A stretch of DNA of 64,000 nt, from contig JBLDXI010000055.1 in NCBI GenBank assembly GCA_047495785.1, forward strand, positions 248,001 to 312,000, in the 5' to 3' direction. The stretch is from Lepidodermella squamata. Taxonomy: Eukaryota > Animalia > Gastrotricha. How positions within the stretch are numbered: position 1 is the first letter of the stretch; every line of letters starts with the position of its first letter. The position numbers and the translations under genes were made by a program. Shown here piece by piece: positions 36,470 through 64,000 of this stretch. The notes under the pieces were generated by a model. That model was not told the DNA's origin and did not search any database. It saw nothing but the letters and a program-made list of their open reading frames with translations.

Positions 36470-39400
36470 ATGCGGCCGTTAGTGATCGGATCGCTAATGG
36501 TCCTCGCCTTGGTGGCGAGCAGCTCAGCTGACCGCGTGGTCCAGTGCACACCTTGCAACCCAAGCGATTATTCCGCTAACGGTAACATACTGCTCAGTTT
36601 AAACATGAAAAGTTGATGAATTTTGCGATTTTCTCAAGTGAATATTCCGATTCCAATGAAGGGTGGATTTGAAATGGGTCTCGAAAGTGCGCAGTTGGTT
36701 GATGGAGTGAAAGAAGCCAGGTTCATCAGCTACTTCGGTGATACGAACAACATGCAAGGCACGTTTTACGTGTCGAGGGCGCATAAACTGACTACGGTCA
36801 AGTATGACATGAAAGCCATGACGTCGTACTTGATTGAGGATGACAGAAGTAAGATCACATTGCGCGTTAGAACTTCACCCAAAGTTTTGCTTTCACAGCT
36901 GCCGGATCATCGAGTTGCGATTTCTCAAATGTTGTCGCTGGAACATTCTCATACAATCACGGCAATAAACACATCGTCTTGCCTGATCGGTTTCTCGACA
37001 CAACCAAGCTGAAATTCCGCAGCTCTTCCCCAACGCGTAAAACAAAAGAACTTGAAATTATCGAATTGTTCTAAATTATTTTGAATATTCAGAGAACGTC
37101 TACCGCGGAATTGACGCCAAAATTTATGACGCTTGTGTCCAGGATTCCGTGACTCGATACACTTATGGCGTTACATACTACTACGCCGATGAGCAAGATT
37201 GGAAAATGGAAAGCGGTCTGAGCGGTCCGTCACCGATTGGCATGAAAATTTGCGCTCAGGCGCCCAATAACAACATCATCACCGCCGAGGTCACCGTTGT
37301 CAATTTCCACAACCACTTGAACGCACCCATTGGATCTTCAGCCTATCACGCTTTGTTCACGGTGAGAATTACTTTATTTAATTCGATTCTTGATGTTTCA
37401 CATTTTCATTCATTTCAGCCACCAAGCAGTAAGTTCTGCCCAACTGATGGCTCCGCTGCAAAGAAGCCGACGTTGACGCAGCGATATTCGTTCCGGGGTG
37501 AGTACTCCCATGACTACAACAAAACAGCCTCGCCAATTCTGGTCTCTTACGACTCGAAATACAACATGATCCGTTACGATTTCTTGCCTGCTATCAACGA
37601 ATTCGATGGCTCTCATGGCTTCCAGACCAGCTGGGTTCAGGACGGCATAACAAAAGTTAACTACAACATTGACCTTGTGACCGGCAAATGCGATGCCTAC
37701 AAATTTGACGATCCCAAGTCGCCCGTCGACTTCACAAAGGGTGCGTTGGCTCTAGTTGGCCCTTCTAGCCTTTCCGATACAGCTTTGGGGAAGCTCAGCT
37801 TTGTCGGAGTTGTAAGTTGGCTTCAAATTCTTCATACAATCATAAATAATTTTTTATAGAGCGGATGTCGCCGGTTGTCTTGCGATGTCTTCACGATGAA
37901 AGACGATAAAAAACAACTCCGCTATGAGTATTCATTCCTTTCTGACACTTGGGCCGAGCAAAACGCCGGTTCAGTCAATATTTCTAAGCACCAAGTCCTC
38001 GCTAGCGTTGCTCAAATCCCATTGGAGGGTACCGCCACCGCCTCAACTATTCAAACTGAAGGAGTAGAGGTTTTCGACTTTGCCAACGACAAATACAAGC
38101 TATGGCAGTTTGAGGTCGCTAACGCCTGCTACCTGAAAACGGGCATAGTGCCAGTTAAACTTGCACATCGCTACATCCGCCTCTACTTCGAAGGCGATCA
38201 TCGCACTCTTGAATCTGAACGCAACGCTTATCTCCGCTCAGCGCTGCTCGAAGCTGTGGCTGACGCGGCTGTCATCAGCCCCATGCGTGTGTCAGGCATC
38301 ACTTTCGATGTTTTCCGTGATCAGCTCAACGCTGAATTCATCATCTGGGAACCGCATCCAGTTACCCTTAGCACAAAGCCAGCCCCAACTTCCCTCAACA
38401 ACGCCGTCACCAACCTGAAAAACAAGGTCACCAAGGGCTTGTTCAAAGTCCAAGTCGTAAGTTATATTTTCGAATTTGAGACTTGTAACAGAAATGATCT
38501 TGTTCAAAAGGGCCACGAATCTGACCCTGCCTACGAGCTCACCGCTGTTTCGACAGTTTTCGATAACTGCGACTCTCAGTGTTCGAAGCTCATTAAAGGT
38601 TAGTTGAAATTTCGTGAAATGATTTTATGGATTTTTCAACTAAATTCAAATAACAGCCGAAGATACGAAACTGAAGTACACCGATGGTTTCTCTATGGGA
38701 ATGCAGATCGCCGTCGATATTCCGACGCTGCCTTCTCTTGTAACTGATTTGCTGCCATTCTTGCCGTCGAATTTCAACACCACCTACTTCATCGAAGCCT
38801 ATCACGGCATGGCTGATGGCGCGAAAGGCGGCCATGGCTCCCTCTATGTCTATGACAAGCACCGCAACTACATCATCCACTACAACGAGCACGCGATGGA
38901 GAGCATCCTGATCAAGGTTGAAGAAGGATCGTGCGATGTCACCAACATGACCGTTGACTACCAGCTGTTCCCATTCGGGTACATGCACAAAGGAGAAAAG
39001 GACAACATTCCTATTCCACTGCCTGAAATCATCACCGACATGACCCGATTCGTCCAGGGTGATTTGAAGGAGCGTGGATGTAAGTAAAAGGGTCCATTTA
39101 TTTATGCTATTTTGATATATCTTTTGCAGCAACCTGGGCTCATGGCTTCTTGACTAACGTTTTTGAGGCAACCATTGACGTTGGAGAACTGAATGGCATG
39201 ACCCTACCTTTTGGCATCAGAGTACCCCTTCTGATTCGTTGGAATTGGCTCGGTAAAACTTAACTCTGCACTTTATGGACTTCACGATATTTTTTCTTCA
39301 GATCGAAACTTCCAGAACGAAGACGGCAACTTTAAGAAAGTTGGGCCTATCCCTATTGCCATGAATCTTGAAGTGTCCATTCCCAGCATTCTTGGTTCCC

Positions 39401-41852
39401 CGGCTGGCGTCGCTACGGCATACATCTCGTTCGTCAACTACCACAACCACTACCCTGATACTGGCGCTACTTTCCACCATGCCGTTGATCCCGACCGTCA
39501 GCTCCTTGAAGTCCCGGCTGGAATCTATTGCACCCCGCGTATCCACGAGGATCCTGGAAAGATTCCGAAGTTGCCGAATTTGCCAACTCGCTACCGAATG
39601 AACACCGAAACAGTTGTCCGCAAGCCTTATCACTACGTCATCAATTCCCAGGTAACAACAGCTTAAATTATTCGGATAAATAGCTTCGAATTATTTTGTC
39701 TATTAGGATTTTATTGACAACAATCGAAGCTTGTACCGATTCGATGTTTCTGAGCATCATCCGACGAAACCAGGCAACATTGCCATTGTTCAGTACATCA
39801 TCGATCCTTTCAATGGTTAGTATAGCTTGAAGCTAGTAATTTTTGCAATTTTCAAAATTTGTCTTGGTAGATCGCTGGTACAAGATCGACAACGGCAAGC
39901 CTGGCACTGATAAATGTACATTTGGCAGAGTTTCTGAGGCCATCGTCCCTGGCGAAGTCCCGCCCCTTGAACATGCTCTTCTAGCGCCGTATGAAATTCT
40001 TAACTTCAATGGCCTTAACGAGGAGTACCAAGGAACTGTAAGTTCGGAAACATAAAGGTCCCATTTACAAATGATTATTTTTCCAGAAACCTTGCCGTGA
40101 TATGATTTGTCATTACTGGATCGGCAAGCGACCTTTTGATATGATGCCGGGCTACACTGGGACTTTCGAAATCTGGTCGTCAACTATCAGATGGGAGTCT
40201 GCTATTGACAAGCTTGACGACAGAGCTACGACCTTTGTCAAAGTTACTGCAACTTTCCGCAATGTGAGTTTCTCGCTTGAATGTCAGTGGATAATATTGA
40301 GAAATTGAAATATACAGGACAAAACTGGCGAAGTATGGCTGCGCGAGGAGATGGAAATTTACAACATGGAGCTGATGACTCCGAAGGACCTGGCTGAATT
40401 CACCCTGCCTGAGGCCAAGTTCTGCTTTGAGGATGACAAGATCCCCCAGAAGCCGGGAGTCGACAGCTCATACACGTATCGTGGGGAGTACGTTGCTTTC
40501 GACAAGCTGTTGGTGCAAACGTTCCGCGTGCTCAACGACGGTGACAACAACCTTTTCCGCTACGACGCCGCCCCCAGCCGTGCAACTGGAGAAGAGCCAG
40601 CGTTCCGTTCGACCGTCCTCATCGACCTCGACGCCAATCTGGTTTTCGACGCCAACCGCATCACCGGTGAATGCACGACCTTCGAAAACAACCTGAAGGA
40701 TCAAAGGGAGATTTGGGACCTGATCTACCCAGAAACATTGGCTCAAGCTGTCGGTGACTACGTCGGGCCACGTGCTTGCCGTTCCAAGTATTGCAACACT
40801 TTCTTGAAGGAAACAGACCGTAACGCTCAAGGCTGGTGGGATATTGAAACCTACTTCACCGGCGACAACTGGATAGAGCATAACTCAGATTACCCGCAAT
40901 ACAAACAAGGCAATGCTTTGACCCGTATTGCAACAAACGCCTTCGAAAAGGACGACTCAGTCATCTTGTCCACGGTAATTTCGCAATCTCGAAAGTAACA
41001 ATTTCTTCTAAATTACTTATATTTTAGCACAAATCGGTCGACGTATTCGGATACACCACCGACATTGCTCGCGAATATGAATTCCACTTTGTTGCCCAGT
41101 GTTTCAAGGATGTCAAGAAGCAGTACTATCGTATGTCGATCAAGGACGAGGACGGAGGTTCAGCGCAACTTCCCGAGGACAGTGAATACTTCAGAACTGG
41201 CTTGATCAAGGCCCTCGCCCAGACGATGAAGATCAAGCCTTACCGCCTCATCAACGCTGTCGTTCGTTTTTTTTCAGCATTTTCTTGTTTCTAATCTTTT
41301 ATTTTGAAAATTTCAGTTCAAGAAGTACAGCGACGAAATTCGTCTGACTGTCGGTGTTGCCGAGCGCCATCCCGATGACAAAGTTGGAGCGATGCTTGAC
41401 TCCGCTATTGCTGACTTGAACACCCTGTTGCGTCAGCCGATTGGCCTGCCAATCCCTGACCTGACTACCACCGACCCGATGCCGACGATCGTTCAACTCT
41501 GGAGCATTACTCCAATCGATTGCGATGGTGACAGCTGCGATATCGACGCTGATAGGCCGATTGTTTACGGTAGGTTTTAGTCTAGTTGTTTCATCCACGC
41601 CTCGGAATAAGAGTATCTGTTAAGGCTTGTATATTAATTGGCTTATAATTACTCCTAGAATTTGACGCTGCAACTGGTTTTGGAGTTTTCTTCGCTTGTT
41701 TCCTTGGCGGCGGTATCCTAACCCTTGTCGGTCTAGGATTCTGGTACAGCCGACGCCTGCGCGTTTCTTTCAAAGACGTTTATCTCATCAAATCGCCATC
41801 AGCTCCGTCAAACGTTGCTCCAGTCAGCTTGTCCGGCCTCAGCTATCCTTGA
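36470..41852 (+). CDS. Uncharacterised large type I membrane protein, paralogue 1: signal peptide, 2 ependymin/LolA-like repeats, SEA-like, 3 repeats, SEA-like, TM
   Basis: Signal peptide MRPLVIGSLMVLALVASSSA; about 17 short introns link ORFs 36623-41580. Repeated P-x3-FC/YC..P.LP..Y..R.E..YD...R.D and CRxxxCxxF/W motifs; TM FGVFFACFLGGGILTLVGLGFWY; stop at 41850-41852. Confidence 0.8.
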
Positions 41853-42387
41853 AGAATCGATATCTAACATGACTCATGATATGATAAGCACTAATATATT
41901 GGCCGAAAATGCCTTAATTGTTACAAATTGTGCAACGAGAAGGGAAAAATTATGATTTCAGGTGCGCTTTACTTCCAACTTCGATTACACAGACATGTTA
42001 AAATTGAATGCTATACTCATGTCTGTTTGTTGACAATAAAAACGCGAGAGAATTGAGCGGCATCAGGTGTTGCATTTGCCCATCTCAAATATCGCGATTA
42101 CGATATTTTGCTGCCCAGCCTCGCACGTGTAGCAGCCATCACGCATATGACGAAACTCGAAAGACTAAGCACACAGAAACAGGTCGCCCGGGCGATTGGC
42201 GCCACAGCTCCCGAGCAGCTGTCAAGTGGCCTCTTATAAAAGGCGCGTGCGAGTTTTCTTTCAACTCAACCTAGTATAGTTGCTCACTTTAGTGATTTGT
42301 GCCGTTTTCAGTATCGAGTTGGCGATTTAAACAGAAACCCAGCCTCGACTTTTACACTTGTTATTGTTTCATTGTTATAAAAAATTC

Positions 42388-43483
42388 ATGGAAACTGTCG
42401 GCTGGAACCCGCTGCTCGATGACCGTTCACACGCATCTACCTTAATGTTCCCTGGTTTTTCGCAGCCTATGGCTAATTCAAGAATCGTGGGCCACAATCA
42501 CTCGCGCCCGCCGCCGCAATCGGCGAATTACCCGAACCGAAATTCAGTTAAATTTTCGTTCAGCCTGTCTGAATTCGGTGATGAAGTTGACAGCTTGTTG
42601 CCTCTGCCCTCGCCAGCAATCAGCATCTCGCCCGGTGTTTTCTTCGATGATCCGTTCAGTTTCCCGCCCCACAACAGCCACAACGTCGATCAATACCAAC
42701 AACGCTCGCCATCTCTTGGTATCGGATCGTCGTTAGCTAACGAGATCATCGACGAAAACAATCATCGCCCGTCGTCGGTTGCGCATTTTTCGTTCCCGAG
42801 GTCCGGGTCGGAGTTGCCGTACGATGCGGCCAGGGCGAAATCAGCAGTACCGGCCTATCAACGACCTGGCTCGTCTGCTGACTGGCACGACGATGACTCG
42901 AATGAATCGCCGATCGACGAAGAAACAGGGTCGGAACACTGGACCGACTGGAACATCAGAACCGCTCCAGGGTGCCCTCGTAAGCTTATTTTCACCCACT
43001 TGAATTTCGAGTAAATTTTTTCTGAATTTAGCTCTTGATCAGCTATTCGAGAACAAGCGTCGCTGGCGTGAAAAGTTCAACCAATCTGTGCCTCCGCCTC
43101 TTCAGCGCCACTGCGTTTTTTGCAAGTCGATAAGCAAACCGCCGAGCGTCTACTTGTCGCATGCGATCCGCGACGCGAGGGGTGACATTACGTGCCCGGT
43201 GCTGAACGCGTACAGCTGTCCGAAATGCGGCAAGCGCGGTCATACAGTTCGCTACTGCGCGTTGAATCAATCATCGCAATCTACATCTTCATCGTCGAAT
43301 TCTTCGCACTCGCCCGTACCTGGCCAGCTGCCGATGATGGTCAACGCTGTCCTCGGCAACGCGACAATGAACAACCACAACCATCACTCGCTGTCTTCTC
43401 GGCTCGGAAGCGTTGGGTCTTTTTCGGACGCCATGGTGATGATGGGCGGCCGATCGACGAAGAGCTCGTTGGGTTTCTATTGA
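42388..43483 (+). CDS. nanos: Nanos (tandem CCHC zinc fingers); exons 42388-42979, 43032-43483
   Basis: CVFC-x12-H-x10-C-x7-CPKC-x4-H-TVRY-C, low-complexity N-terminus, TATAAAA at about 42235, T-rich 3' UTR with AATAAA at about 43892. Confidence 0.88.
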
Positions 43484-44694: not shown

Positions 44695-46880
44695 TCAAGT
44701 TGACGCGCAAACATCGAGTTCGAGGTGAAGCAGGTGATCGATCAATTCGTCGGCTAAATCTTCCAATCTATCCAGTTCGATTGCCATAGTTGCATCGATA
44801 ACTTGATCAAAGATTCTAACAAAATATTTAAACTTAAATAAATTTTTACAGGAATAATCCATCCACATACCTATTTTGGACGATATCAACGATCCTGTCG
44901 AAGTAACTCAATTCAATGGTAGAACCAGCATCGTCGTCATGTTTTTCCGGAACACTTTTAAAGCTGACAGGGCTGGGCGCAGCTTCGGCCATCAGATGCG
45001 CCATCAAGCCTTCGCTTTCTTTCAATTTGGAAGGCCGGCTGTCCACTTCCCTGTGTATTTCTTTCACTGGCTCGTAGAAAGAAGGAGGTTTATATTCCGC
45101 GTACGATTTCGTAGATAACCATCTATTTCTAATGGCTGATGCCTCCATGTCCAGTTGATAAATTCGAGACCGTATCAAGGCCAAATCAGGCGAGGTTATT
45201 ATATCTGCGGCGTGGTAGCCCGAGCGGTGATGTTGAGTTGGAGCAGCTGAATACCGATTTGAATCAAGAGACATTCGCGACTGATATAGATTGCAAGGTG
45301 ACGATGATTCAGAAAATCGAGGAGAACCATTTGTGTCAATAGCGAGCCGATGATAAGGCGACTCTGCCGGAGAATAGCGCGTTTGCCTTTCAGGTGTATT
45401 TCGACCTGCCATCGAGCTTTCGGGATGTTTGTCTGCTTGAGGCTTGGATGATTTGGTTAATTCAGCTGGTAACTTTTTGGGAATGCGAATGTCCCTGACA
45501 GCGACAAATCGCGCTTCGTCTTCTTTGAGAGTCTGATTAACGCTCGATGCGTCGCCATTGTTCGAGTTTTCACCTTGAAATCTAACGACGCGAGTGGCCA
45601 CGGAATCTTCCCGGATACCATTCGACAATTTTCTACTCTTCTGGCCATTAGAGTGGAGGCTACTTTGATTGCTTCTGTTGCTAGCTTTAGACCGATCTGA
45701 TTCTCTTGATTTAGATCTGGGCACAGGAGACACAGCCTTAACAAGTGGGCCAGGTTTCAATTTTCGAATCGACTCAGCAAAATCGTGGTCAGCCGCGGAA
45801 CCTATATTTAGACAGATTTTTTAATTAAATAATATATTGCAGTCAGATCAATTTAACTGTATGTGTCGTAACATGATGAGAGTTTCTCTAGCAACGAACA
45901 AAGTTGAGAATACAACGCAGCACTAGGCATAATCGAAGCAGTAGGCAATGGTGAAATCGACCTTCGACCGTTGCTAGCTTTCTCTTCAGTTTCATGGGCA
46001 AGTTGATCTTGATGATGAACAAAGGAACTTAAACAACGAATAGCCGATTTGTGAATAGTGTTAAGCTGCTGGATTGACAAGTGTCGTTGAACGTTGCTGT
46101 TCAGTCCACGATGAATTGTTGGCTCAGATGGATTAGAGTACTGCTCAAGTTGATGTTGCAAAGAATAGAGGGTTCTAGAGACTTGGGCGTTCAGACATCT
46201 CTCATTTTGATTCGAAGAGATGTCAGGCTTTTGGCGAGAATCAGCTGATGGGACAAACAAATAAAATTAAATAATTAATAAGGCAACGGGCGACGCCCTG
46301 TCATACCTTTCAAAGCAATCAGTCTGTCAGTATATAATTTAATTGCCCTCCGCATTTGCTTTACCTCCTCCTTGTGATTATTTAGCTCGACGGTGTAGTT
46401 ATGCGGTAGATGGGATTTGTGTTCACAATCGTGCCGATGAGTTCCAACAGGAGCCACACGACTTATATGACGAGAAGACTGTTTATCATCAAAACCTCTA
46501 TCTTGCGTTTTCGAAGGAGGCCTCTCATCATTCAACTTTTGCTGCCGTCTGTGAGCACTCCGGGATGCATTGTTTTTCCGCTCACTCGCCTTTTTATCGT
46601 CGCATGGTGCAACCGGGGGTTGTTGGCCAAATAAGAATGGCGAACTGGAATAAGAAACTCCGTGCTTAGCCATTTCTCTCTCAAGAATCTGATGTTTTAG
46701 CCATCTTTGGGCGAGCTGCATAACAAAAATATGTTGTACAGAAAGAAACTAATCAAGTCGATTTACCTTTTGCGCGATTGAAAGATCATTTTGAGGCAAG
46801 TTAGCGCTATAATATAAGTTTTCGTGGCTATTTTGGGGCCTTGTAAGTTTTTCAAAACAAAAAGGCCCTTTTTGGGTCAT
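44695..46880 (-). CDS. Moonraker / KIAA0753-like centriolar protein (5 exons; 5' end uncertain)
   Basis: Collinear motifs recalled from moonraker: FEKL..LSIAQKLAQRWLK, SRTLYSLQHQL, IHKSAIRCLSSFV, AIRNRWLSTKSYAE and an acidic C-terminal helix (ELDRLEDLADELIDHL). All four introns splice in phase. Confidence 0.7.
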
Positions 46881-48523: not shown

Positions 48524-51500
48524 ATGCAAGATCTCGAAGTTCCATATAACCACGGACAACAGATTGGACTTAATGGATCTCGATATCACTCGGAATCCGA
48601 GCTTGTTATTGAGCGCTATGAGCAGGTAAGCATTTCAGAAACTGTATTTATAGAATTTTAATGTGTGACCCGTATTGCATGCTCGCGATATCCTACGCTG
48701 ATGCAAGCGCTTCGTTTTAATCAATTGCAATTTTCCGTGATTGCTTCTCTAATATCAGGTCTCACACACTTTTCCCATGTCGATACACGAGTAGTATTTC
48801 TCCATATTCTTCCGTTGTTTATCATTGTTTGGAACGGTAAAACATCGCTTTTCTTACCTTCTCACTCTCTAACAGCTCACTGGTCGAAAGTTACCAAGTG
48901 GAGGCGCAAAGAACGTTGTGCACTTTTATTTATGCATTATTTGTGTGCACCGGAGCGGCTCGTCTCTTTAAGGCGCTTGATGATGGCGAAAATGATGATT
49001 GCCACATGTACAAATGGAGATTAAATATTTACTTGAGAATAGAATTATCACCCCGAAGCGTGTTTGCCTCTTTGTATTTGCGATGATTATCAGCGCAATT
49101 ATATTTTTTATTCACTAATAAAGTGCCTGGCCACCCTTCAGTTTCCTCTAAATCACACGTGCCCAGGTCCACTAAGCCAGCAACAAATTACTGGCGACTA
49201 ATACCCGTGGTTTTGAAAAATTAACGTGTCAAGGATTAGTTTTCATCGCCTGTAGGCCTGGCGGTATAAAAAGGCGGAAATTGAATTCATTTTTTACACT
49301 TTCTTATAGCGAATTATTTTCAGTGCATCGTATGCCTTTATTGTTGCTCACTCAATCGGCGGCACACAATAATATATTATTCAGTATTGACCGTCGTCGC
49401 ACTGCTATTATTATTGCTTTTTTCATCGTCGTTATGCTGCAGTCAACCGAGATTTTCAATTTTTCGACTCGTGGCGTCTATAGATCATGAAAAATGAATT
49501 TTCTATTCACCATCGAAGACGTGTTAACGTTACTTCAATGCTCTCTTGTCCTCATCTGCATCGTCGTTGTTCACCGATTAGTAGTTGCATCGACCGCAGC
49601 TAATTAGTGAACGGCTACCACAATGCCTAGCTGTGATAATACAGGCAATGAGTTGAACCTAGTTCTCGCTGAACTCGAGTCGCTTAGCGCTGATTTGAAA
49701 GCGTACCAAGTCGAATTTCGGCAGAAACAATGCCAACGGCCGAATCAGACGACCGTCAAAATGGTGTTACCCATGCCGTTGCCGCCTAACCCCGTGCCTC
49801 CCCTCGCTCATGGAAGCAACGAATCTCTGTACGATAACGTTGCAGATAGTAGCAGTTCGACTAAAACATTCAGAAACAAAGCGAGGGCTGTGAAAACTCG
49901 GATTTGCCTCAAGCCCGGTGATGAGTGCAGTCGAGTAATCGTCGCTGATAGCAATAAACCGGCGGAAGGCGAAGATTTAGTGGCGATTGACGAGGATTGC
50001 GATTATGCCCGCGGCTTCGACGAGAACATCGAGCAACTGAAGTGTTTAACTCTCGACGACCCGGCGCTGGGTGACGAACAGCTGTCTCCTGTCATGAAAC
50101 GCTTCAAAGTCAGCAGCGATGATCTGGGTCAGACATTCGAATTTTACGAGCAGGAAAAGCCGGCGCCGAGCCGAATTATATTCGTTTCGCCGTGCTACTT
50201 CAGCCCACCCGGCAGCGCTAATCAGGACCAGGTGTATCGGGGGACCCACGCGAGCTCTTCGCCGAATAGCGAAAGTCAGGCTACTACGATTATTAATAAT
50301 AATAATAACAACAACAGGAAAACTGTTACTTTTGCCGGTGAGCAAAACAACTGCGGAATGAAAGCCACTATTGAGTCGGAAATTATTCGCAAGTATGAAA
50401 GCCAAGGAGCCGACGAGGTAGGTCCTTCGCGAGTGTTTCTCATCATGCTAGGCAACAATTTGTTTGTGTGTGGTATTAATTAAATCAATTAGCATAATTT
50501 GATAGCTCGTAAGGCGTTTGTTTTGATTTAACTCTCAACAATTACTGCTTCAAGTTGCAACTCGTGATAAAAAGTAATAAATATGCGCATAATAATAATC
50601 GGCATCGCGCCTCTTCGTAGCCGCGCCCGCGCGCGCGCTCGAAATGATAATATTGATTTCTCGCTCAAATATTTATTTTCGATATGAATGCGTAATAAAA
50701 CAACAAAGTTACTGTGACAAAACGATTCGGAACGCGGCAGCGTCGATTTGTCACGTTCTGCCTTTTCATCAATCTCTACGATAATATGATAACATTTTCT
50801 TATTTGTTCGATCGATCGTTATTAATAATAATAATAACGAATTCGATCTACACAGAGTTTACTCTGTCACTTTTACAAATTTGCATTCTGCCAATTCTGT
50901 TTGTCCGTTTCCTCGTTTATAGCAGCCGCTCGCGCGCAAGCGCTCGATTTCGCGCGGGCCTCGCGCGCCGCATCCGTCGCGACGATAATACAATATCCTC
51001 TGCGTGTTAGTCGGAAAGCGTCGTCTTGGCCGTTTCCCCACATCTCTTCGCGAGCTCCAACACTACACTAGAGCTTTACAATTTGTCATCGCCGATGATG
51101 CTGATGATGATGATGAAGACTATGATTGTCGTTGTTTGCTGCAAACGTGCGAGAGCAGCAGATCGCCATGCATTCATTTAATGCCAATATTAATATTCAT
51201 ATAATCTACACTGCTGTAGTAGTAGTATTGCAGTAGTAGTGTATAAACCCGCCCTCTGAGCTCGTCGTCGTGTGGCCATAGGGCTGAAACTAATGCATTG
51301 GCTAATACACAATCCAATAGCATTCATCATTTGTTATGTAGTAGTGTGGATCGCTTGCTCTTCTCTATCGCGCGCTGTTGTTTAGGTCGCGTGGCCCGTG
51401 TTTCTAGCATTCATACGAGGCGCGCTACTCCGCAGCCGTTATACACACGCAGAAACATACATCTCGATATTTCATACTCGCATTATCTTAGACGGGCTCC

Positions 51501-54500
51501 CCTCGCTCTGCCTCCCAGCCCGCTCGGATCCGTCTTAATTTTGCGTTCGCTTATCGCCAATAAACATTGTTATTGTTCGGCCAATATAACTTGCAAGTAT
51601 CGCTGTTGTAGACACAACATGATGGTCTTTTTTCAGCAGCCTTAATCCATCACGTAGTTCTTCTGTTTTTGTGTTTAGACATATTCCATCGGGCCTGCTA
51701 ATATATATTCCGTAATAAGACGCGTAATATCTCTTATATATATATTATTCCCAAACCATTTGAACAACAGATCAAGTACACACGTTTTTATTGCATCATT
51801 GTTTCTATGAATTCCCGAACGTAATTATACACACACATATCAACATCATCATCATCGTTTCATCGACTGTCTATACTTACAACACGCTCATCGCTCGAGT
51901 TTTTGCCACAACACTACGAGAGGTAGTTACCGCGCTTGACTGCTTTGAAGTGTTGAAATTGTGTGTGCCTGTGTTTATGTGTGTTCTCATAGTAATACCT
52001 ACTAGTAATAACAACAGCGTTCGCGTTCAGAGCAGCATATGTTGATGATGCACTTTCAAACATTAGTTCAACCCTACAATAATAACATTTATTGTTATTT
52101 TTCCATTGCAATTATTAGTTTTTCTCCTCTTGAACAAACAACCCGACAAGTGTCTGTTTATTCTCATCGAAAACGACACTTGTGCAAGAAGCGCGTGCTA
52201 CGTTCAATAATACCGACTTTTCACAATAGAGAGAGACAACCGTGCGTCCGAATTCAAGCTTTCATTCTTATTGTGTTATCTAGCAATTTTAACGCAATTT
52301 AAGTCGCTTACCTGTCGCGGCTTTAATTATTATCATAATTTATTATTGAGATCGCGCACGACGTTATTTTAATACCTACGCTACTGTCTTGCACAGGGTC
52401 GTCCCAAAAACTGCCAACTCGGTACTGAGGAAGAACCGCCATGGTCTTTGACCTTCAAAACTGATCGATTCGGATTTTTACAGTAAGTTGAAATATTATA
52501 TCAAATAATTTAATTATATCAACTAGATTCATTTAAATTTCCCGAATAAGAACTCTGGGAACTCTCTAGATGTTCTCAGTTATTTGTCCTCGTCAATGCG
52601 AACTCTCAAGTTAATGAATTTAGATGATTAGAATGGACAGATTTCAGGAAACCTTATCGTATTAGGTGTCTGACTTCAGCAACAGACAGCTCGAATAATA
52701 TATTACTCGTGGTTTAGTCAAATGAATTTTTATTTATTTAAGTTGGCTTCATAAGGTTGGTAATGTGGGGTAGCAAAAATTAACTTTTTATTTTATTTAT
52801 AGATATAGAATATAGAATATAGATTCATTTACAGCACTATTAACCCGATAATTATGTGAAAGGTCCTTATAATACTCGAAATTATTAATACTTCACGCTA
52901 TTTATGGAGTATTTCGTGCCTAGATGTAATATTGATGATCGAATTTCAAAGTCAATTTGAGATCAAATGCTAAATTTAGTTCCAAGGCATATTAAATTGA
53001 GCAGCTTCAAAATCCAATTTGAAAACATTTATGTGAGCCGATTTCCCAACAGACCTAAAGAGAATTAGTAGCATTACATCGTTTTATTTTTGCTTGATTT
53101 AACAACATTTATTTTATCCATTTGTTTAGCGATATGAAATTGCCGGAAGATTATTCTGAAGAGGAACAGCGTCTAGTCAAGAAGCAAGCCGAGCGCGAGC
53201 GGAAATGGAAGAAAATGCTGACGAGATTCGACCGCGTGTCCAAGGACAAGCTGCGGTCTCGCGTCCACAAAGGCATTCCGGACTCGTGCCGCGGCGTCGC
53301 GTGGTCGAAACTGCTCAACGTCGAGCAAATGCGGCGGCGACACCCGGCCGGGTTGTACGCGACCATGCTCGACTATGGCCTAGCGCACTCGCGCCACATC
53401 CGCCAGATGGACATCGACATAAATCGAACGTTCCGCGACCATGTACTATTCCGCGAACGGTACTCGGTCAAACAGCGCCAGTTATTTCACGTGTTAGTCG
53501 CTTACTCGGTTTACAACGCCGAGGTCGGCTATTGCCAGGGCATGTCAACCCTCGCCGCTTTCTTGCTCATGTACTTCGTCGAGGAAGAGGACGCGTTCTG
53601 GGCGCTGGTCGTTCTTTTCAACGGATATCAAGTCGACGATCGCCATGTTGTTTCAAAGTACAAAATGCATGGCTTTTACACGGATGGCTTCCCGAAATTT
53701 CAGCGCTTCCGCGAGCACCACGCCGTTTTACTGAAACGATACATGCCTCGCCTTCAGAAACACCTCGACAAACTGCAGTTCAAACCTGAACTCTACCTAC
53801 TGAAATGGCTGCTTGATGTTTTCATCGGCGCTGTGCCCGTTTCTTTACTTCTCCGCGTTTGGGACGTGTATCTGCTGGAGGGCGAGAAAATTCTGGTGGC
53901 TTTTGCTTTCTGCATCGTGAAGATGCATGAAAAACGGCTGATGAAGTTGAAACAACTCGAGGACGTTCTCGCGTATTTTCAATCGTTATCTCAGTCGTTT
54001 GGTGCTAGCGACGACGTTGTAATCGCCTGTTTACAGACTACAATTGACGATTTAATCCGCGACAAAATGCTGCCACTGCCCCATGCGCCGCAAACTGAGT
54101 TGCCGAAATACCGGCTCGGGGTGATTCCACCGGAAAACGAGCAGCACGGTCAATTGATAATCGCAACTCAGCCTCAAAATCAAAACAGGCAACAACTGGT
54201 TTCAGAGGTGGTTGAAACCTACCACGAGCATCGAGAACAGCACACGCCGTCGATTGTTATGGAGGACTTGGTCATTGTCCAGACTAAGAAAACTGAACCA
54301 GAAGCGCCACCTCCCCACGTTCCACCGCCTTTTGTGGTCGAGCAGACGGTGGTAGTGAACAGAGAGCAACAGCAAACCCCGACAAAAACGTTGCATGTGA
54401 AAGAAAACATTGTAGTGACCTTCCAGGAACCAACGCTAGTTACAGAGCAGGTTAATCAAAATATGACTTACGATGTCAGCCAAAGTGTTTCACCCATGTC

Positions 54501-56314
54501 TGCCTCAATTGTCTCGTCGAAAACAGCGACCCCGACTACTACTGTTAAGGCGGCTCAAATTGCGAGCCCTCAAACTGCGTCATCATCTGGATCCTCGCCC
54601 GCTAAATCGCCCCAGGAGCCGCAACGGCCGCTTGAACAGCAGCAAATTACAGTTGCGTTTGCTGAAGAGAGAAAACAACAGCCGCAAATACAGCCTCAAT
54701 ATCAGCCGCAAGTTCAAGTTCAGTATCAACCTCCACCTCAACAACAACAACAGCAACAGCCGATTTTGTTCCAACAGCAGGAGGTGCAGCAAAATTCAAC
54801 GTGGAGCTCGCCGTACCGACAAGAGGCGACTCCATCTCCGTCTCAAGGCATTTCCTACAACTATTCATCGCCGTCTCCGAGTAGCCAGGCCCGTTACCCG
54901 AGTTTTACACCGCTGAAATCGGTCTCAGAAACGTTGAGCGAGTCGTCAGCTCACGCCTCTCCATCGCCGATGCATGGCAATAACGAATTTTCGTTGGCGT
55001 ATGCCCAGGCGAAAATGGAGCGGGATCTGCGGGAGGCCGAACAACGCCGGTTGCGGCATCAACAGGCGAGGGCTGAATTTTTCCGCGCGATGCTAGCCTC
55101 CGGGTCGCTTTACTCGACCGGGCGGTCAGTTGACTACCAGGTACGTTGGTTTTTTTTGAGTCATTTCAATTTTGTTTACCCTGATCCGTATAGTTCGATT
55201 CTTAGTTCTGCTTAGCCTTCCGACGCAGTGTAAGATCGGCGATGTAATCGAGTACTTATCATATTTTAGTTTTACCTAATTAGTTCTTTACCCATATTTG
55301 CACTAGAAAATCACGTAAAATCAAAATTTGCAACTAATACCGCATATTGTGATCACTGCTCAATTTTACAGCTTTCCGGTCATGCTATATGTATTTTTCA
55401 GTTGATGGGAACTGGGGTAGAACTATCCATTTTTTAGGAGGCTTATTTTATTATTTATCTGTCATGGACATTTCTTAGAATTCCAGCTAACCTAATCATA
55501 AAGGCGTCAAATTTGATCAATCCCTTTGATTGGATGAAAATTTGATTTGTTAGAAAATAATTCGACGCTGTACTAACTCGATATTTGATAATTGGTTCTT
55601 TTTTTTTTATAGGAAAATGGTGACCCGAAAATGTCGCAATCAGCGTACGCGTCTCCTAGCCACCAAATAGGCACAAATGGTCATTACTCGTCCGAAGTTT
55701 CTCACCGGCTCGATTCGTCGAGCGAAATTCCCGTGCAAATCGAACGGCGGCCGTCGTCGTCGGGCGCAGTTCGAACGAGCGGGTCTCGAAAGTCGTCGCT
55801 GGGCAACGGCGATCCTCCTCAAATCATGAGCCAGTCGATGCATTCGAAGCACAGCAGCCAGGGCGCGGCGGAAGACGTGATGCGCCAGTCGATCCACTCG
55901 CAACACTCATCGCGGCATAGCAACCACGAGCAGCAGCAACAAGCTGCCGGGTCTATGCGGCCGTCCCTCCACTCGTCGCACTCGCTTGCGTCGAAGCACA
56001 GTCGCGGCGAGGCGGCAGAGGCGGTTTTCGAAGGCGACTACGACAACGTGGATAAGTACCAACAGCAAACACCTGTCGCGAAAGAGGGCGACTACTACTG
56101 CTACGAGCGTGAAGAGCAGGTCGTGGTGTTGACGGCGGATGCAAGCGGCGGCATGAGGAGGAGCCGGACCAGCAGCAGCAATCGATCGACCCGGGAGGAG
56201 CGCGTCGAAATCGAAGCGGCCATGTCGAAGTCGATGTCGGTGCACTCGCAGGCGTCGTCGAACGGCGGGCGGAAGCAGCCGTCGCGGTCGACGAGCATGC
56301 ACTCGGACGTGTAA
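48524..56314 (+). CDS. USP6NL: USP6NL / RN-tre-like TBC-domain RabGAP; exons 48524-48625 (or alternative 49623-50417), 52397-52482, 53130-55140, 55613-56314
   Basis: VIERYEQ|GR, KTDRFGFLH, RSRVHKGIPDSCRGVAW, Arg finger QMDIDINRTFRDH, Gln finger VGYCQGMS, EEDAFW, LRVWDVYLLEGE; long Q/S-rich tail. Confidence 0.88.
49623..50417 (+). CDS. Alternative long first coding exon of the USP6NL-like gene
   Basis: 265 open codons ending ESEIIRKYESQGADE with a phase-0 donor GAG|GTAGGT compatible with the exon at 52397; own TATAAAA at about 49265. Confidence 0.7.
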
Positions 56315-56941
56315 ATGAGTACTAGTTGCGTTGTTTTGGTTTCATAGTTGGTATTTATATATAACACAACAATATTTTGTATCTTCGAGCTTAACATCAT
56401 CAACTTCATCTTCGTTATTGTATTATATAATATCATTCGCAGCCGTTCGAACAGAAAAAAATGTGCCACGTTATATTGCATACGTATGAGTGTTAACAAT
56501 AATGCCATTTTTGCCATCATAGTTTGGTATCTCGCCTCACAAATTTTAACGATGCTGTTCGATTTCGCTTTTCAAAAGTGTGCCGATTTCGGGGTTAGTA
56601 TTGATTTACAACCGCTTAGTATGAACGCTGTATAAATGGCTATTATATATGAGAGGAAAAAATCTCGCTCTGAATTTTACTGCAATCAGTTGCTATCTCT
56701 TTGTCAATCTCACTGCAGTATTATATCACGTCGGTAATAGCAGCTCCTTTTTAGCGCCTGTTAGTACGCTACTATAACGTGTATTACGGCATCTGAGAAC
56801 CATTTACTTTTTTCTTTTGTTTTTGACATGAAACGTTTTGGAAGGTCATCAGCAAGGATGCAATTTGAATAAAAATAAAAGCGATGAATTCACAGCCTCG
56901 TCTTTTTTCGACCCAGTCAGACGCTCATACATCAAAGAATG

Positions 56942-57153
56942 AGATAAAACAGTATAATTAAGGAAGCGAGACCTTTATCATCGCACCAGCCGCCCCGCGA
57001 AGTCAAAACAAAGGCGAGGTATTTTTGTCTCGAGAGATAAAAACCACGGCCTACCAAATTTTCTGGAACTGGATAAGCATTTAGGAAACGGGGTGTGATA
57101 ACAATCAAGAAATGAACTTGACAAATCATAATCGCTAGCACTTGAAGAGATAA
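56942..57153 (+). promoter_or_regulatory. GATA-site cluster upstream of paralogue 2
   Basis: AGATAA 56942, 57035 and 57148; TTATCA 56975; TGATAA 57096; GGATAA 57071. Confidence 0.5.
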
Positions 57154-57284
57154 CCTAAAGTCACACCGAGTTTTGACAAACACTGACTGCTTTATTATAA
57201 TTTATCCGGCTTTAAAATGTAATAGGTGCCAAGGCTTTTTAAGTTTCAAAAACTTGAAAAGCCCGATTTTATTATCGAGACACA

Positions 57285-60200
57285 ATGAGATTTGTGGCGC
57301 TTATAACAGCCTTAATAATTCCAATCATCTATGGCCAGAAAAATTATCCTCCTGCCTGCAATATCGAAGACCCAACTTTGAGCTATAACGCAAATGCACC
57401 TAAACTATTACAGTAAGTAATTTTTAACTGTCAGTAAGCCAAGCATTGATAACTTGAACGTCTTCCAGGACAAATGGTTTCGAGTTGTCGATGCAAATCC
57501 CATTTCGTGCGATAATAGATTATGACATTCCGAACCTCCCGCCAGTCTATGATCAAGAAATGACAGAAACTTTCTTTCTCAGATCCTATGGATATAACCA
57601 AACCAGTATGCCGAATTTGAACGACATTTTCCCCAAAATATACTCATGCTTTTTGTTCAAGGGGGTGTATCCTACGTTAGCTACAAACACAAAACAATCT
57701 CAGTTGCATACAACAAAAATAAAAATGAATCTATCGCCGTGAATTTTCAAACAGGTAAGCTCTTAGCTGATGTAATCTTGTTTCATTTATATTATGATTT
57801 TGATTCAGAGAAATGCGACGTCCAGCCAATGATTTATGACGATAAGTACTTCTTCGGTTACTGGCATGGCAACAAGTTTCAAAACGAAATTCATATTCCT
57901 TTCCCTGACGTTTTGACTGATTTGACTCGATTCAGGACTAAGAAATTGAAACCTTTAGGCTAGTTCAATTACTACATACAACCTCAATTTTTATTTCAAT
58001 TTCGTGAACAGGGCACTATCGAGGCTTTGCTAATGTTGATCGCTACGAGGGATGCATCGACCTTCGATCGCTGATTATAAGGATTTTATCCGAGCTGAAT
58101 TCTGGTGTATTTAGTGACCACATTATTCCTCAACTGGTTCTAGACAGCATTCCGGACCCTTCACCCGTTAAGGTGACGTGGTACTGGTCTGATCCAGCTT
58201 GGGAAATGGAGGATGGTATAATTGGCGATCCAGTACCCTTGGGGATTGATTTTGTCGGTGATTTTTCTTCGGAGACAACTTTTCCGAAGAAAATGTCACT
58301 TGACCTGAAATTTGCAATGTCAATGGTTGCTGTCAACTATCACTCGCATTACCCGGATTCCGATCACCTCGGCGATTTGTTGCAGTCCCCGCCTGGCATA
58401 AATTGCAAGGTGTCGCCAGAACCTTCGAATCCCCTTTTCCCGAAGCTGCCCGAGTTGTTCCACATTCGAGCAGAAAGTGTCATTCAAACGAAAGATGACG
58501 AGGGACATTTCCATAATGCACACATCGAAACTGAAGATTACTACGATTTCAGGAGGAAGCTTTTCCGATTTGACGTCTCGGTGCATAGTAACATTTTGCA
58601 AGGGCCTTCAATGCTTCAATTTTTTCAAGACCTCAACAAAAGTAAGTTTTTTTTACTGAAATTGATCTTATTTACGAGATGAATCTTCTCTTTTAGATGT
58701 CAGCTATGAAGTCAATCGAGATGAAGGTGATTGCATCAAACGAGATATAGATCAAATGGCTCCGGGTGAATTAGGATCTGGTATTATTTCACATTTAATG
58801 ATTCGTCCATACGACGTGTTGGCAATAAATGATTTGGAACCAAGTTACATCGGAAAGGTAGGAAAAGAATCGCTCGAGAATTTTCCATGCTATTCATAAA
58901 CATGTTTTCAGAAAAAATGCCGTGGAATGACTTGTGACTTCTGGGTAGCAGAAAAAGACCTAACTTTTGTTGTGGGTGGCAACCCAACCTACGGCGTTTA
59001 CAGCATTTGGAGTACAGTGGTATTTATAAATTGATGCCTATAATCTATAAAAAATTATACCGAAATTTCTATTAGGATACTTGGAGCGGCAATTACACGT
59101 ATGAAGATCGTTCCGCGAACGGCTTTATTGTCGAGGTAGCTGTTTCTATCAGGGACAAGGCAACGGTAAAATTTGAGGACATCGTACAATTGTATTGATT
59201 TACGGGATTCTTACAGGATGCAGTTGTTGGCCATGAAAGCTTGCAAATATATGACTATCGGGAGTTGACTACCAACAAGGATGTGTTCTACATGTTTCCA
59301 ACGGGCATGTTCTGCGGTGACGAAATGGGCGCGCCGATAAATCCGACCATGCCCAGGCGTTACCAGTATCGCGGCGAATTTTCAGACCACGCCAAGAATT
59401 ACTCCTATCCGATTTTTGTAAGTAAAAATCGCAAAGTAAATTAAAGTTTTCAATTTTCAATTTGATACAGTTGAGTTACGATGTTGACTGGAACGTCATT
59501 CGATTCGATTGGATTCCTTTGGATGTAAGAAAAATCTATCTTCCTGATTATACCTAAAATACCAATTTTTCAGTTGGAACATGAGGGCAAAGATCAAAAC
59601 TACGAGCAGACTTATGTCTATGACTTGCGATCAAGCGTTAACTACCGCGTCAATCGAGCCGATTTCAGCTGCGAAGCTTTTCCAATCGATACCGACTACG
59701 CTGGTGAGGACATCGATCCCCTGTCCATTTTATGGCCGCCGAGGGTGAAATTTTTTTTACCTCGAATGAAATAAAGTAAACTCTTCTTGCTTAGCTCTAT
59801 TACCACCTTACTCACTCGAATTTGCGTTACATCGGCGTTCACTTATGCCGGCGAATGGTAAGTCTATCTTTATTTCATTTAAATAAGACTAAGTATGTAT
59901 CTACCATTTACTCGTAGTTGTGTGATACTTTTGAAATAACCGAAAAAACATCTGGCAATGCGAAGGACATTTTTGAGATCCAGTTCACGACAGTAAGCTC
60001 TTCAAATCAGACAATACATTTTTCACGCTATTTTACGCAATAACAGAGTCAATTTACGGAAATTTCCGTTGACAATCCTTCCCATGCGGAGAAAAACGTA
60101 CTCACTCGAATCGCCAAGTTTGAAAGCGACACCGAAAAGTTACAACTCGGCCATATTGAAAGGTTGCAATCGGTCGATATCTTCGGCTACGTTGATCAGC

Positions 60201-60943
60201 GAAGCGTTTACTGGGAATACAACATTGCTGCCGCGTGTTTTCAAAACGTGCTATCAAAATGGGTTCGGCTGCATTTGCGTGGCGATACCGCTGATGTTTT
60301 GGACATGGTGAGCAATGGCTATTTCAAGTTGGCACTGATGGACGCTGTCAGGCAGAGCGCTGCGAACGTGACCCCGCTTCGGATCGCTGATTTCCACCTG
60401 CACAAAAAGAATGAAAAAGACCCATTGAGTTTCACTGCCGAATTCTTACTTCGCGACCGACATCCAGCTGAAAGCTTCGAAGGTCCATCTCTCGTGGACG
60501 CTCTTATCAGTTTGAGGTCTGTTGTTGCAAGCGGCAATTTCTCGGTTACAATCGTAAGTTTTCTTGAATTTTATAACAACTTTATCTATTGATACCACGT
60601 TATGAAGGAGGTACCGTCAACCAACATCCAAGACCCGGCTACGATCCACATTGTAACGGCGGAAACTAGCTTCGAAACTTGCGATAGAGAGTGCACTGTG
60701 AACGATATTCTTTCTACGCCAACTTTTGAACTCGATGCGAACGCTCTAGTTGGCACGATAATTGGCAGTGTGATAGCTGGCGGTCTAATCATTGCCCTGG
60801 CCATGACTGTCTTCATCAGCCGACGGCACCAGGTGCCACCAACCAGCCTCTACTTCGGGACAGTGCCCGGCACTGGCGTTTCAACCGATCTGCCCCCGGT
60901 AGCCATGTCTGACATGGCTGTTTCAAATGATGTTGCTATGTGA
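57285..60943 (+). CDS. Uncharacterised type I membrane protein, paralogue 2: signal peptide, 3 ependymin/LolA-like repeats, SEA-like, TM
   Basis: Signal peptide MRFVALITALIIPIIYG. Collinear with the C-terminal half of paralogue 1 (IPFPDVLTDLTRF, VNYHSHYPD, PPGINC, CRGMTCDFW, YQYRGE). TM ALVGTIIGSVIAGGLIIALAMTVFI; many 50-60 nt introns including one GC-AG. Confidence 0.8.
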
Positions 60944-61200
60944 TCAAATGCGTACTATGAAATTCGGCCTGTCATCAACTTTCATCCCAGTGGCATTGAG
61001 CTGATATGCAATGAACATATTATTATCCATGATTTCATTTTCTACCAAGTTTTTTTTTACAATTTCGTCGTTTACAGGATGGGGTAGAGGTATCACCAAT
61101 GATTTAATCTTGAGATACAAAAATAATTAACTTGATACCCCTGCCTCCATCCTTCCTCTTCAACCACCCGGGTATTAAAAAGTTGTACATAGAATCGTTT

Positions 61201-61508
61201 TTATCTGTATAATATATTACATCCCCACTTATAGCTGGGGATATCATGTCTTCAGAACACACGTTGGGTGCTTGCTTTATTTTATCTCCAGTTTATCACG
61301 TCGCCGAGCCGTTATTTGTGTTGCTTTTATTCTCGTTATAAAATAAAATACCTGAGAATATAAGAACGGGCTTTTTGTTTTGTTGCGCCTTTCGGGTATA
61401 TTATCGCCAGTGTCCTATCTCCCGATTCGCGAAACGGCAACGAGACTTCTTATCTCGCATGAGACAAGCCTCTCGCGGAGTTATCTATCAGGATTTTTAT
61501 GTCTATCA
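61201..61508 (+). promoter_or_regulatory. GATA-site cluster upstream of paralogue 3
   Basis: TTATCT 61201, 61282, 61450 and 61481; TTATCA 61293; additional CTATCW sites. Confidence 0.5.
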
Positions 61509-61601
61509 GTGTATTTTGTTACAGGCTGAAAAACTCGAGTTATACGCCAGTTTTGTCATTTTATAGTTCCATCTTTCTTCTTAGGTGTTTTTGTTCAAAA
61601 A

Positions 61602-64000
61602 ATGAGGCAAGCAGCGCTGATCGTGCTTGTTTTCGCCTCTATTGCGGCCCAAGTTCGAGGTCAGGTTCCTCCACCGGCTTGTAAATTGAATGACGGCTAT
61701 GAGTTCGACAAGAATGCTCCGAAGTTCAACGCGTAAATTTCAGAACTCCAAAAAACAGGCTGTTTGCTAATCTTTTTGTCGATTTTATTCAGTGAGAACG
61801 GGTATGAAGTTTTCCTACAGGTTCCGGTTTATGCCGATGTAGTGAAAAGCCTCGGCAACAACTTTAACGGAATCACGACTGAAACGTTCTTCGTCCGAGC
61901 CTTGCAAAACAGCGATGGACGTAAGAAGACTGCCAGCTAAAAATGAAAAATTATTCAATAATTTTTATTGCACGAAACAGGCGGCGTTGCATACATCTCT
62001 TTCCAACACAAGATGATCTCGCTGTCCTACGACAAGGTCGCTAATGAATCGATCCTCATCGACTACCAATTCCGAACATGCGATGTTCAGCGCATGTATA
62101 TGGAAGATGCGCATAGCAGTGGCTATTTCCACGGCACCGACCGGCCTATTTTCGTCCCATTCCCTGAAAATTTGGCCGATTTGACCCAATTTAAGATCAA
62201 GAAGCTGAACAATCGATGTAAGCTACCCGATATCATTATTTTTATTGCTGTATTGATGTTTGGTTATTTTCCAAAGCGCGCTACCGAGGATTCGGAAATG
62301 TTGACGTGTATGAAACCTGCTTCGATGTTCGTCCGATTGCTTTGCGTGTTCTGAAGGAGATCGCGAGCAACGCGAAACCGCCAATACCACCTGATGTACT
62401 GGAAGGTTTGCTGCCTAATCCTTCGCCAGTTCGTCTCCGCTGGATTCTGGCTGACCCCAACTGGGAAATGGAAGATGGCCGCGATACCAGCGCCAGCGTT
62501 CCTCTTGCCATTGAAGCCGAATTAGCTGTTGGCGTTCCGATCGTCTTCCCTCGCCTCGTTGTCAACGCTACAATCAACTTCGCCAACTTCCACAGCCACT
62601 ACCCAGAGGTCGACAGCCAGACGGAAGACTTGATGGAACCGCCACCAGGTGTGCACTGCCCGAATCGCTTCTATCGCGAAGGTGCTGAGCGTAAATTGCC
62701 GAAATGGCCGCGCAAGTTCCACATGAAGTCCGAGGCTGTTGTTGTCGAAGACGAGAAGAACGTCGTCTTTGATTCGTCCGATTACTACGACTATGACAGC
62801 AAACGCTTCCGTTTCGACATCCGCGTTCAACGCCCGAATAAACAAGGCTCAGAGGTCTACGAAATTCTCCACGACTACGTTAACAGTGAGTTGTTTGAAG
62901 CTTTAAATTGGTATTAAACATGATTTTTTTTCATTTAAAGATCTTGTCTACACCATCGACCGAACTGAACGCACCTGCAAGAAGAGGAACTTGGACGAAT
63001 ACAAGGGTGATTTCCAGTTTGACGACAAGCCAATCACTCATTTGCTCCTTCGTCCTTACGATTTGCTTCAAATCGAGGACATGGCTACGACCTACATTGG
63101 AAAGGTATCTAGAGAATCTTTGCTTTAGAATTTCATGAATTTGCATGATTTTACTTAGAAACCTTGCCGGGGTATGGGATGCCATTACTGGTCGGGGCAG
63201 AAAGATCTCGAAATCAAGACAAAGGATGGCAACCCAACATACGGTGTTTTCGGCATTTGGGCGACTCGTCGCAGCTGGAGCTCCAACTTAACGGTCGATG
63301 TACCTGAAGAAGAAGCTGTCTACCATATTGTCAAAATCGAAACTATCATCTATGAGAACCGAGGTGGCTGGAGTGTTGTAAGTTTTTCCTGATCATTTAA
63401 ATCATTTTCATCTTATGGCTGTTATAGGATAAGTACGTCGGTCGAACGAATCTGGAAATCTACGATTACCAAGAGCTGACCGCTAAGAAGGACATTTTCT
63501 TCCTGGTAATACGCCATAATTGTATTTGAGATAGTCCTTTAAATTTTTGATTAAAGGCACCAAATGAGGCATTCTGCGGCTACGAGCTCGACCCAGTAAG
63601 GAACCCTGATATTCCTGACCGCTTCCATTTCCGTGGCGAGTACAACTGGGATGCGCAAAACATGTCATTCCCAATCTACGTCAGTTGTTTTTACGAAATT
63701 TCTCAAGTTTCAATAAGTTATCATAAAATTTAATTTCAGATGAACTACGATGCTGAATGGAACGTCATCCGTTTCGACTATGTGCCGGCTACCCCCAATG
63801 ACAGTCCGACAAGCTTCAAGCAAAGCGTTGTTTTTGATCTCAGATCAAGTAAATTCATTGAAAATTCGAGTTTCTCCTTGCTTATTCCCAATATTTTCGT
63901 CCAGATACTATGTACACTGTCGATCGAGTTTTGGGAACATGTAAAGCTGATACTATTCCAGCTGGTTATGCTGGTGAAGACATTGATCCACTGCGACTTG
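61602..64000 (+). CDS. Paralogue 3 of the ependymin/LolA-like membrane family; tandem duplicate, runs off the window end
   Basis: Signal peptide MRQAALIVLVFASIAAQVRG. Shares PPAC, VPFPENLADLTQF, DPNWEMEDG, NFHSHYPE, PPGVHC, CRGMGCHYW and YAGEDIDPL with paralogue 2. Confidence 0.82.

Follow-up and report, generated by a model that had tools for sequence, protein, structure and literature searches.

The window analysed here is a 64,000-nucleotide stretch of contig JBLDXI010000055.1 (C55:248001-312000) from the 121 Mb, 151-contig assembly of the gastrotrich Lepidodermella squamata, and it contains a cluster of three paralogous genes. The best explanation, given a probability of roughly 0.55, is that they encode type I membrane glycoproteins in which a chain of LolA/ependymin-fold domains is carried on a SEA-like stalk, most likely holding hydrophobic ligands at the cell surface. 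The ectodomain would string together beta-clam domains of subtypes D1 and D2, set on a SEA-like module without the autoproteolytic motif and followed by a transmembrane (TM) helix and a tail of 34-41 amino acids (aa) whose sequence is conserved between orthologues. The three genes would be lineage-specific elaborations of a rare metazoan D1-D2-DUF7959-TM family found in molluscs and a crinoid, with D2 apparently duplicated in the window genes and the whole ectodomain unit also duplicated in gene 1.

Open reading frames (ORFs) in the window are broken up by introns of ~45-60 bp, and searches were run exon by exon or with natural ORFs of related contigs, with splicing inferred from the DNA. Each of the three genes encodes a signal peptide (SP), tandem beta-rich domains of ~200-300 aa, an alpha/beta juxtamembrane module, a single TM helix and a short tail. 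The starts at 36470, 57285 and 61602 and the stops at 41852 and 60943 all fit the sequence, and the N-termini are signal-peptide-like; together with paralogy by BLASTP, this bears out the three paralogues that an earlier note on this DNA had placed at 36470-41852, 57285-60943 and 61602 onward. The membrane anchoring proposed in that note agrees with the type I topology read from all three genes, i.e. an N-terminal signal peptide, a single C-terminal TM helix and a short cytosolic tail. In exon-by-exon BLASTP, genes 2 and 3 share 36-55% identity (E down to 2e-35), and gene 1 shares 25-35% identity with genes 2 and 3 (E 1e-8 to 3e-14). The aligned D2-type copies (alignment A4) have invariant columns at P4, C9, E30, D47, R54, D56 and D76 and a conserved CR...C pair, and a D-x7-R-x-D core, seen as the motif [YND]D...R[FY]D, is present in all seven D2 copies of the window, including the copy at 39707-39817. 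The ~200-aa repeat motif described earlier holds for these seven copies but not for four others, the first domain of each unit, which carry a different motif and constitute the second subtype, D1 or A-type.

Hidden Markov models (HMMs) for D1, D2 and the SEA-like module were built from 14 distant relatives, including P0015, which carries both of the newer Pfam models discussed below, and their matches give the layouts of genes 1-3. The D1 model matches A-type (first-position) domains (E 2e-6 and 6e-6) as well as one B-type domain (4.5e-9), from which it follows that D1 and D2 are homologous. The D2 model matches the B and C positions scored, at E of about 1e-7 to 5e-20, and the SEA-like model matches the modules of all three genes, including the two in gene 1 (E 4e-4 to 5e-15). 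When the A-type and D2-type alignments (A5 and A4) were compared with hhalign, only their shared boundary was aligned; for the A-type domains an ependymin lead at 0.91 was obtained from Atlas. Counting the presumed D1 copies, there are 11 LolA-like domains across the three genes, five in gene 1 and three in each of the other two.

All three genes lie on the forward (+) strand. Gene 1 (36470..41852) has the layout SP-D1-D2-SEA-D1-D2-D2-SEA-TM followed by a tail, both SEA elements being SEA-like, as judged from open stretches, paralogy, the HMMs from distant relatives and the orthologue P0005. Its signal peptide (36470..36529) is a hydrophobic N-terminus after the ATG, followed by an intron-split first D1-type domain, A (36530..37439; D1 HMM E 2e-6 at aa 11-70 of 37056-37856; alignment A5), a D2-type LolA/ependymin-like domain, C (37413..38132; D2 HMM E 3e-18 and 1e-6; alignment A4), and an internal SEA-like, DUF7959-type module (38115..38495; SEA/DUF7959 HMM E 5e-15; E 2.6e-13 in BLASTP against the gene 2 module). 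The two halves of the gene are linked in frame by a canonical GT..AG intron of ~57 bp, read from the sequence at 38598..38654; the A' domain after it lacks its own signal peptide, and in the orthologue this region is a single continuous ORF. The second half comprises the D1-type A' domain (38668..39531; D1 HMM E 6e-6; alignments A3 and A5), the D2-type B' domain (39502..40305; BLASTP to the B domains of genes 2 and 3, D2 HMM), the D2-type C' domain (40399..41105; 40309-40995 is one exon, modelled with AlphaFold2 (AF2)), a juxtamembrane SEA-like module in two exons (41091..41538; SEA HMM E 4e-4 for the first exon, BLASTP to the orthologue E 7e-24 and 2e-18), and a TM helix of 26 hydrophobic residues (41670..41747), after which a 34-aa tail runs to 41849.

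Gene 2 (57285..60943) has the layout SP-D1-D2-D2-SEA-TM-tail, again with a SEA-like module, on the basis of BLASTP, HMMs and an orthologue on related contigs L004 and L007 that is 39-47% identical. It comprises a D1-type A domain (57336..58406; alignment A5, D1 HMM), a D2-type B domain (58377..59186; D2 HMM 5e-7; alignment A4), a D2-type C domain (59295..60241; BLASTP to the orthologue P0002, whose model matches EPDR1, VioE and LolA), a juxtamembrane SEA-like module (60227..60556; SEA HMM 9e-9; 44% identity with residues 197-360 of P0002, a stretch that takes in the part matching Trop2 and MUC16), a TM helix (60743..60817) read from the sequence and corresponding to an AF2 helix at residues 401-431 of P0002, and a tail at 60818-60940. 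Gene 3 (61602..64000 in the window) begins with the same SP-D1-D2-D2 series, as identified by BLASTP, HMMs and the extended contig sequence, and runs past the window end to C55:313017, 1017 bp further on, where the rest of the D2 domain, the SEA-like module, the TM helix and the tail are encoded. The juxtamembrane alpha/beta module and TM helix, earlier attributed to the two complete genes, are present in both of these, with the amendments that gene 3 also has both and that gene 1 has an additional internal module. A tail motif, S-[RK]-[RK]-H-x-V-[PS]-x-K-[SA]-L-Y-x-G-x-x-P-G, is common to gene 2, gene 3 and the orthologues with small individual deviations, which hints at a cytosolic partner.

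Structure prediction supports a LolA/ependymin-type fold for the D2 domains, in line with the EPDR1/LolA-like repeats that had been proposed; AlphaFold and Foldseek returned EPDR1, LolA and VioE both for one window repeat and for an orthologue. The orthologue, P0002 (472 aa, orthologous to gene 2), was modelled with an alignment of relatives to a mean predicted local distance difference test score (pLDDT) of 78, with 222 of its 472 residues at 90 or above. Residues 45-257 match human ependymin-related protein (EPDR) 1 (6e7o; Foldseek E 1e-6, probability 1.0), the sponge protein EPD-BCP1 (8i34), VioE, LolA, LolB and RseB, and by VIA-align the scores are Z 16.0 for VioE, 14.9 for 8i34, 14.6 for mouse EPDR and ~12 for LolA. 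The window exon 40309-40995 (AF2, pLDDT 63.5) also matches EPDR1 (Foldseek E ~5e-4), 8i34, VioE and LolA, with VIA scores in the range Z 8.8-10.4 (VioE 10.4, 8i34 9.8). By these matches the D2-type domains modelled belong to the LolA/EPDR superfamily (CATH 2.50.20), which is characterised by a curved antiparallel beta-sheet clam of ~11 strands. A conserved Asp/Arg pair is D70/R77 in EPDR1 and D38/R45 in VioE (PMC6363788), and the D-x7-R of all seven D2 copies has the same spacing, the comparison being one of spacing.

The juxtamembrane module is likewise supported as SEA-like by the orthologue model, in which residues 258-385 form an alpha/beta sandwich adjoining the membrane, in keeping with the ferredoxin-like SEA fold, and match the Trop2 C-domain (Z 9.4, root-mean-square deviation 2.9, 105 residues aligned), MUC16 SEA (Z 7.3-7.4) and Gpr126 SEA (Z 7.2), as had been anticipated for a SEA fold next to the membrane; the module was folded as part of P0002. 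No Pfam SEA match was found on the window exons or the aligned relatives, and in the SEA-like modules of genes 1-3 the beta2-beta3 turn has no conserved Gly-Ser, the autoproteolytic G/SVVV motif not being conserved. At residues ~312-325 of P0002 (contig L004) the beta2-beta3 turn reads D-D-G-S-K-V-I-C, which recalls the G/SVVV site, in P0002 only and not in the window genes.

A Pfam scan of 20 exon translations gave nothing relevant. The gathering threshold of the Pfam Ependymin model (PF00811) is 32.3 bits, and the sub-threshold matches among 24 aligned sequences were confined to four, all distant relatives, the best at 19.8 bits (E 9.5e-4); a genome-wide PF00811 search gave no match, but its control was also silent and the result is uninformative. 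Because no profile reaches a solved EPDR or LolA sequence, it is the fold and one motif that carry the link to EPDRs. The searches of PDB sequences returned an arabinanase similarity (E 0.03), judged to be chance, as was a non-significant similarity (E 0.12) to the TM region of APP C99. The C99-like stretch corresponds to positions 579-627 of profile A2, in the TM region of the relatives, and is glycine-rich and GxxxG-like, which is no more than a lead for gamma-secretase-type cleavage.

Whole-genome searches with three single proteins and the D2 profile across the 121 Mb gave matches only at C55:285401-312984, i.e. in the three genes, so that this is a single three-gene cluster and not the expanded family that the earlier note had described. 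Outside the genome, a word search with exon 40309-40995 returned one protein, P0001, which is 51% identical and derives from metagenome contigs, and profile A1, used in a word-index search of proteins, retrieved just three. Contigs L003-L005 and L007 are syntenic with the window, in the order Mito_carr, Vta1, gene 1 orthologue, nanos and gene 2 orthologue, and their genes are almost intronless: P0005 (869 aa, one ORF) covers the D2-SEA-D1-D2 part of gene 1, while for gene 2 L004:4895-6220 (441 aa) covers part of D1 together with D2, and P0002 covers D2-SEA-TM-tail. These ORFs of 441, 472 and 869 aa are intact at 40-50% identity to the window genes, which, with the synteny, argues for function.

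A full HMMER search with P0002 against 1.84 billion representatives returned only 23 proteins at E<=1e-3. The distant relatives among them, such as those of Mercenaria (XP_053387920), Haliotis rubra (XP_046549636) and the crinoid Anneissia (XP_033126557), are ~620-690 aa long, are all named "uncharacterized" and have the layout SP-D1-D2-SEA-like-TM. In relatives from Saccostrea and Solemya (among P0013, P0017 and P0020), four PAN/apple domains are added to give 1290-1376 aa, and the relative P0020 (788 aa) has an added SRCR domain; as read from these sequences, the putative LolA-like/SEA-like cassette is combined in relatives with recognition-type domains. Precomputed matches to LolA_2nd_metazoa (PF25898) and DUF7959 (PF25899) are recorded for the orthologues P0001, P0002, P0003 and P0005 and for the more distant P0015, and the window genes would belong to the same set by proxy, through the HMMs of relatives and through the orthologues. 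The description of the system as undescribed is accordingly superseded, since its domains are already in newer Pfam and uncharacterised mollusc and crinoid relatives exist; no paper in the library searched names PF25898 or PF25899, and the family is catalogued but uncharacterised.

Comparison with known systems places the window genes closest to these metazoan PF25898 and PF25899 proteins, which share the signal peptide, D1, D2, a DUF7959/SEA-like module with an SP[LMV]R[IV] motif, TM helix and short tail, and whose homology is indicated by HMMER (E 7e-10 to 1e-3) and the local HMMs. The relatives have two LolA-like domains, whereas the window genes have three, through duplication of D2, or, in gene 1, five and a second SEA-like module; identity is only 20-27%, and PAN or SRCR additions occur in some relatives. 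EPDR1/MERP and EPD-BCP1 share with the window domains the beta-clam fold (Z 14.6-14.9 for the orthologue and 8.8-9.8 for the window repeat), a D-x7-R pair of equal spacing, N- and C-terminal cysteines and an extracellular glycoprotein context. However, EPDRs are single-domain, soluble, dimeric and secreted or lysosomal, whereas the window domains are in tandem in one membrane-anchored chain, do not reach the Pfam Ependymin threshold and gave no sequence match to solved EPDRs. LolA, LolB, LprG, RseB and VioE share the fold, VioE being the top VIA match, but are prokaryotic, periplasmic or cytosolic and without disulfides, SEA or TM segments, and no sequence similarity to the window genes was detected. 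SEA and SEA-like domains (MUC16, MUC1, Gpr126, the EpCAM/Trop2 C-domain and Notch HD) share the alpha/beta sandwich before the TM helix and beside a structured domain; the window modules differ in having no Pfam SEA match and no conserved G/SVVV, and one of the two copies in gene 1 is internal and lies far from the membrane. The EpCAM C-domain is itself regarded as SEA-type but not self-cleaving (PMC7349879), and Trop2 is among the receptors listed with SEA or SEA-like domains (PMC6586460).

The hydrophobic-ligand reading is drawn from what studied members of the fold bind. EPDR1 binds fatty acids, anilinonaphthalene sulfonate (ANS) and anionic lipid membranes (PMC6608618, PMC6363788), EPD-BCP1 binds carotenoids (PMC10470211), lipoproteins are the cargo of LolA and LolB, triacylglycerides bind to LprG, and the substrate of VioE is hydrophobic. 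By analogy, what the window domains most likely hold at the cell surface is a hydrophobic ligand such as a lipid, sterol, carotenoid or lipid-modified protein. Since EPDRs act as dimers, neighbouring domains in one chain could mimic the EPDR dimer as covalently linked pseudo-dimers, and the SEA-like stalk would probably act as a rigid spacer and as a place where shedding is regulated, as in EpCAM/Trop2/Notch-type receptors. The assignment to digestive or phagocytic cells made in the earlier note is unsupported.

Several points weigh against this reading. No window exon matches PF00811 even at E<=1, and PDB sequence searches with single exons and with profiles A2, A3 and A4 gave no EPDR or LolA match. 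The window repeat itself was modelled with moderate confidence (pLDDT 63.5), its last strands lying in the next exon, while the D1 domains are presumed LolA-like from HMM links of E ~1e-6 in a small database. Splice junctions were placed from the DNA. The receptor role for hydrophobic ligands is suggested solely by the fold, and sharing the fold does not settle how a ligand is bound, since the ligands of EPD-BCP1 sit at the dimer interface and not in the pocket.

The alternative that survives best, although considered unlikely, is that the proteins function as receptors for adhesion or matrix, or as signalling molecules, in which the LolA/EPDR-like domains bind protein or glycan and no lipid and the EpCAM/Trop2/dystroglycan-like stalk works in contacts between cells or between cell and matrix and undergoes regulated proteolysis. 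The stalk matches the Trop2 C-domain best, PAN/apple or SRCR domains, which are typical for proteins of recognition and adhesion, are present in addition in bivalve and other relatives, the D2 model resembles the N-terminal part of an Entamoeba Gal/GalNAc lectin chain (9gjc_H, Z 8.9), and a SEA-like domain beside a structured domain is often a proteolytic switch (PMC6586460). However, all biochemically studied members of the fold bind hydrophobic ligands (PMC6363788, PMC6608618, PMC10470211), and no adhesion motif or partner is known. It is distinctly improbable that the proteins instead give rise to soluble products released by shedding, for example coat or mucus proteins that carry pigment or lipid, with the anchor serving delivery only; canonical EPDRs are secreted (PMC6280359, PMC10470211) and shedding is common among SEA and SEA-like receptors (PMC6586460), but the G/SVVV autoproteolytic motif is not conserved in the modules, and the retention of the tail motif in gene 2, gene 3 and the orthologues suggests that the anchored form matters. 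More speculative still, and given little credence, is that these are ligand-gated proteolytic-switch receptors, in which capture of a hydrophobic ligand would alter the packing of the last domain on the SEA-like module and so expose sites of shedding and intramembrane cleavage in a Notch-like manner; if this were true, animal cells would sense extracellular lipids in a manner not known before. That the genes are non-functional, as decaying duplicates or chance strings of ORFs, can be dismissed almost entirely, for although all exon boundaries were deduced from the DNA, the exons are colinear with the intact 441-, 472- and 869-aa ORFs of a related species with conserved synteny at 40-50% identity, splice sites are canonical and motifs are conserved in all copies.

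Upstream of gene 1 the window contains genes for a class II aminoacyl-tRNA synthetase of the D/K/N type (25043-27141), a Frag1/DRAM/Sfk1 protein (29182-29517), a mitochondrial carrier (Mito_carr, 33425-34189) and Vta1 (34882-35541), and the order Mito_carr - Vta1 - gene 1 is syntenic with L003 and L007. Between genes 1 and 2, at 43088-43480 (+), there is a zinc-finger gene of the nanos type (Pfam zf-nanos, E 2e-16), and the order LolA-like gene - nanos - LolA-like gene is also kept on the related metagenome contigs L004 and L007. Between 44000 and 52000 there are several ORFs of 100-300 aa without a Pfam match, e.g. 44849-45760 (-) and 49623-50480 (+); the interval around this region is much shorter on the syntenic L007, and may be a lineage-specific insertion. 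A USP6NL-like RabGAP-TBC gene follows as one 697-aa ORF at 53122-55212 (+), with ~45% identity to bilaterian homologues that is equal across all phyla, and it is not present in the nanos-to-gene-2 interval of L007. Elsewhere, at L015 (G000:C12:469900-472000), there is a divergently oriented H2A/H2B pair, and at least 74 histone-fold matches were found in the genome at E<=1e-10, a figure that counts matches and not gene copies.

EPDRs are treated in the literature consulted as single-domain soluble proteins, and in an evolutionary survey the presence of several ependymin domains in some gene models was put down to faulty modelling (PMC6280359); the present locus departs from that picture. The long uninterrupted multi-domain ORFs of its orthologues indicate that animals do possess a branch of the LolA/EPDR superfamily that is multi-domain, anchored in the membrane and coupled to a SEA-like stalk, such that multi-domain architectures do exist in this EPDR sister family. 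What is new here is the presence of three to five LolA-like domains and the doubled unit, in a family that is itself catalogued but unstudied. With 11 domains in three genes and natural duplicates among them, the locus offers a tractable entry to what eukaryotic LolA-fold domains bind, and it also makes it possible to examine whether ligand capture is linked to shedding through a SEA-like stalk.

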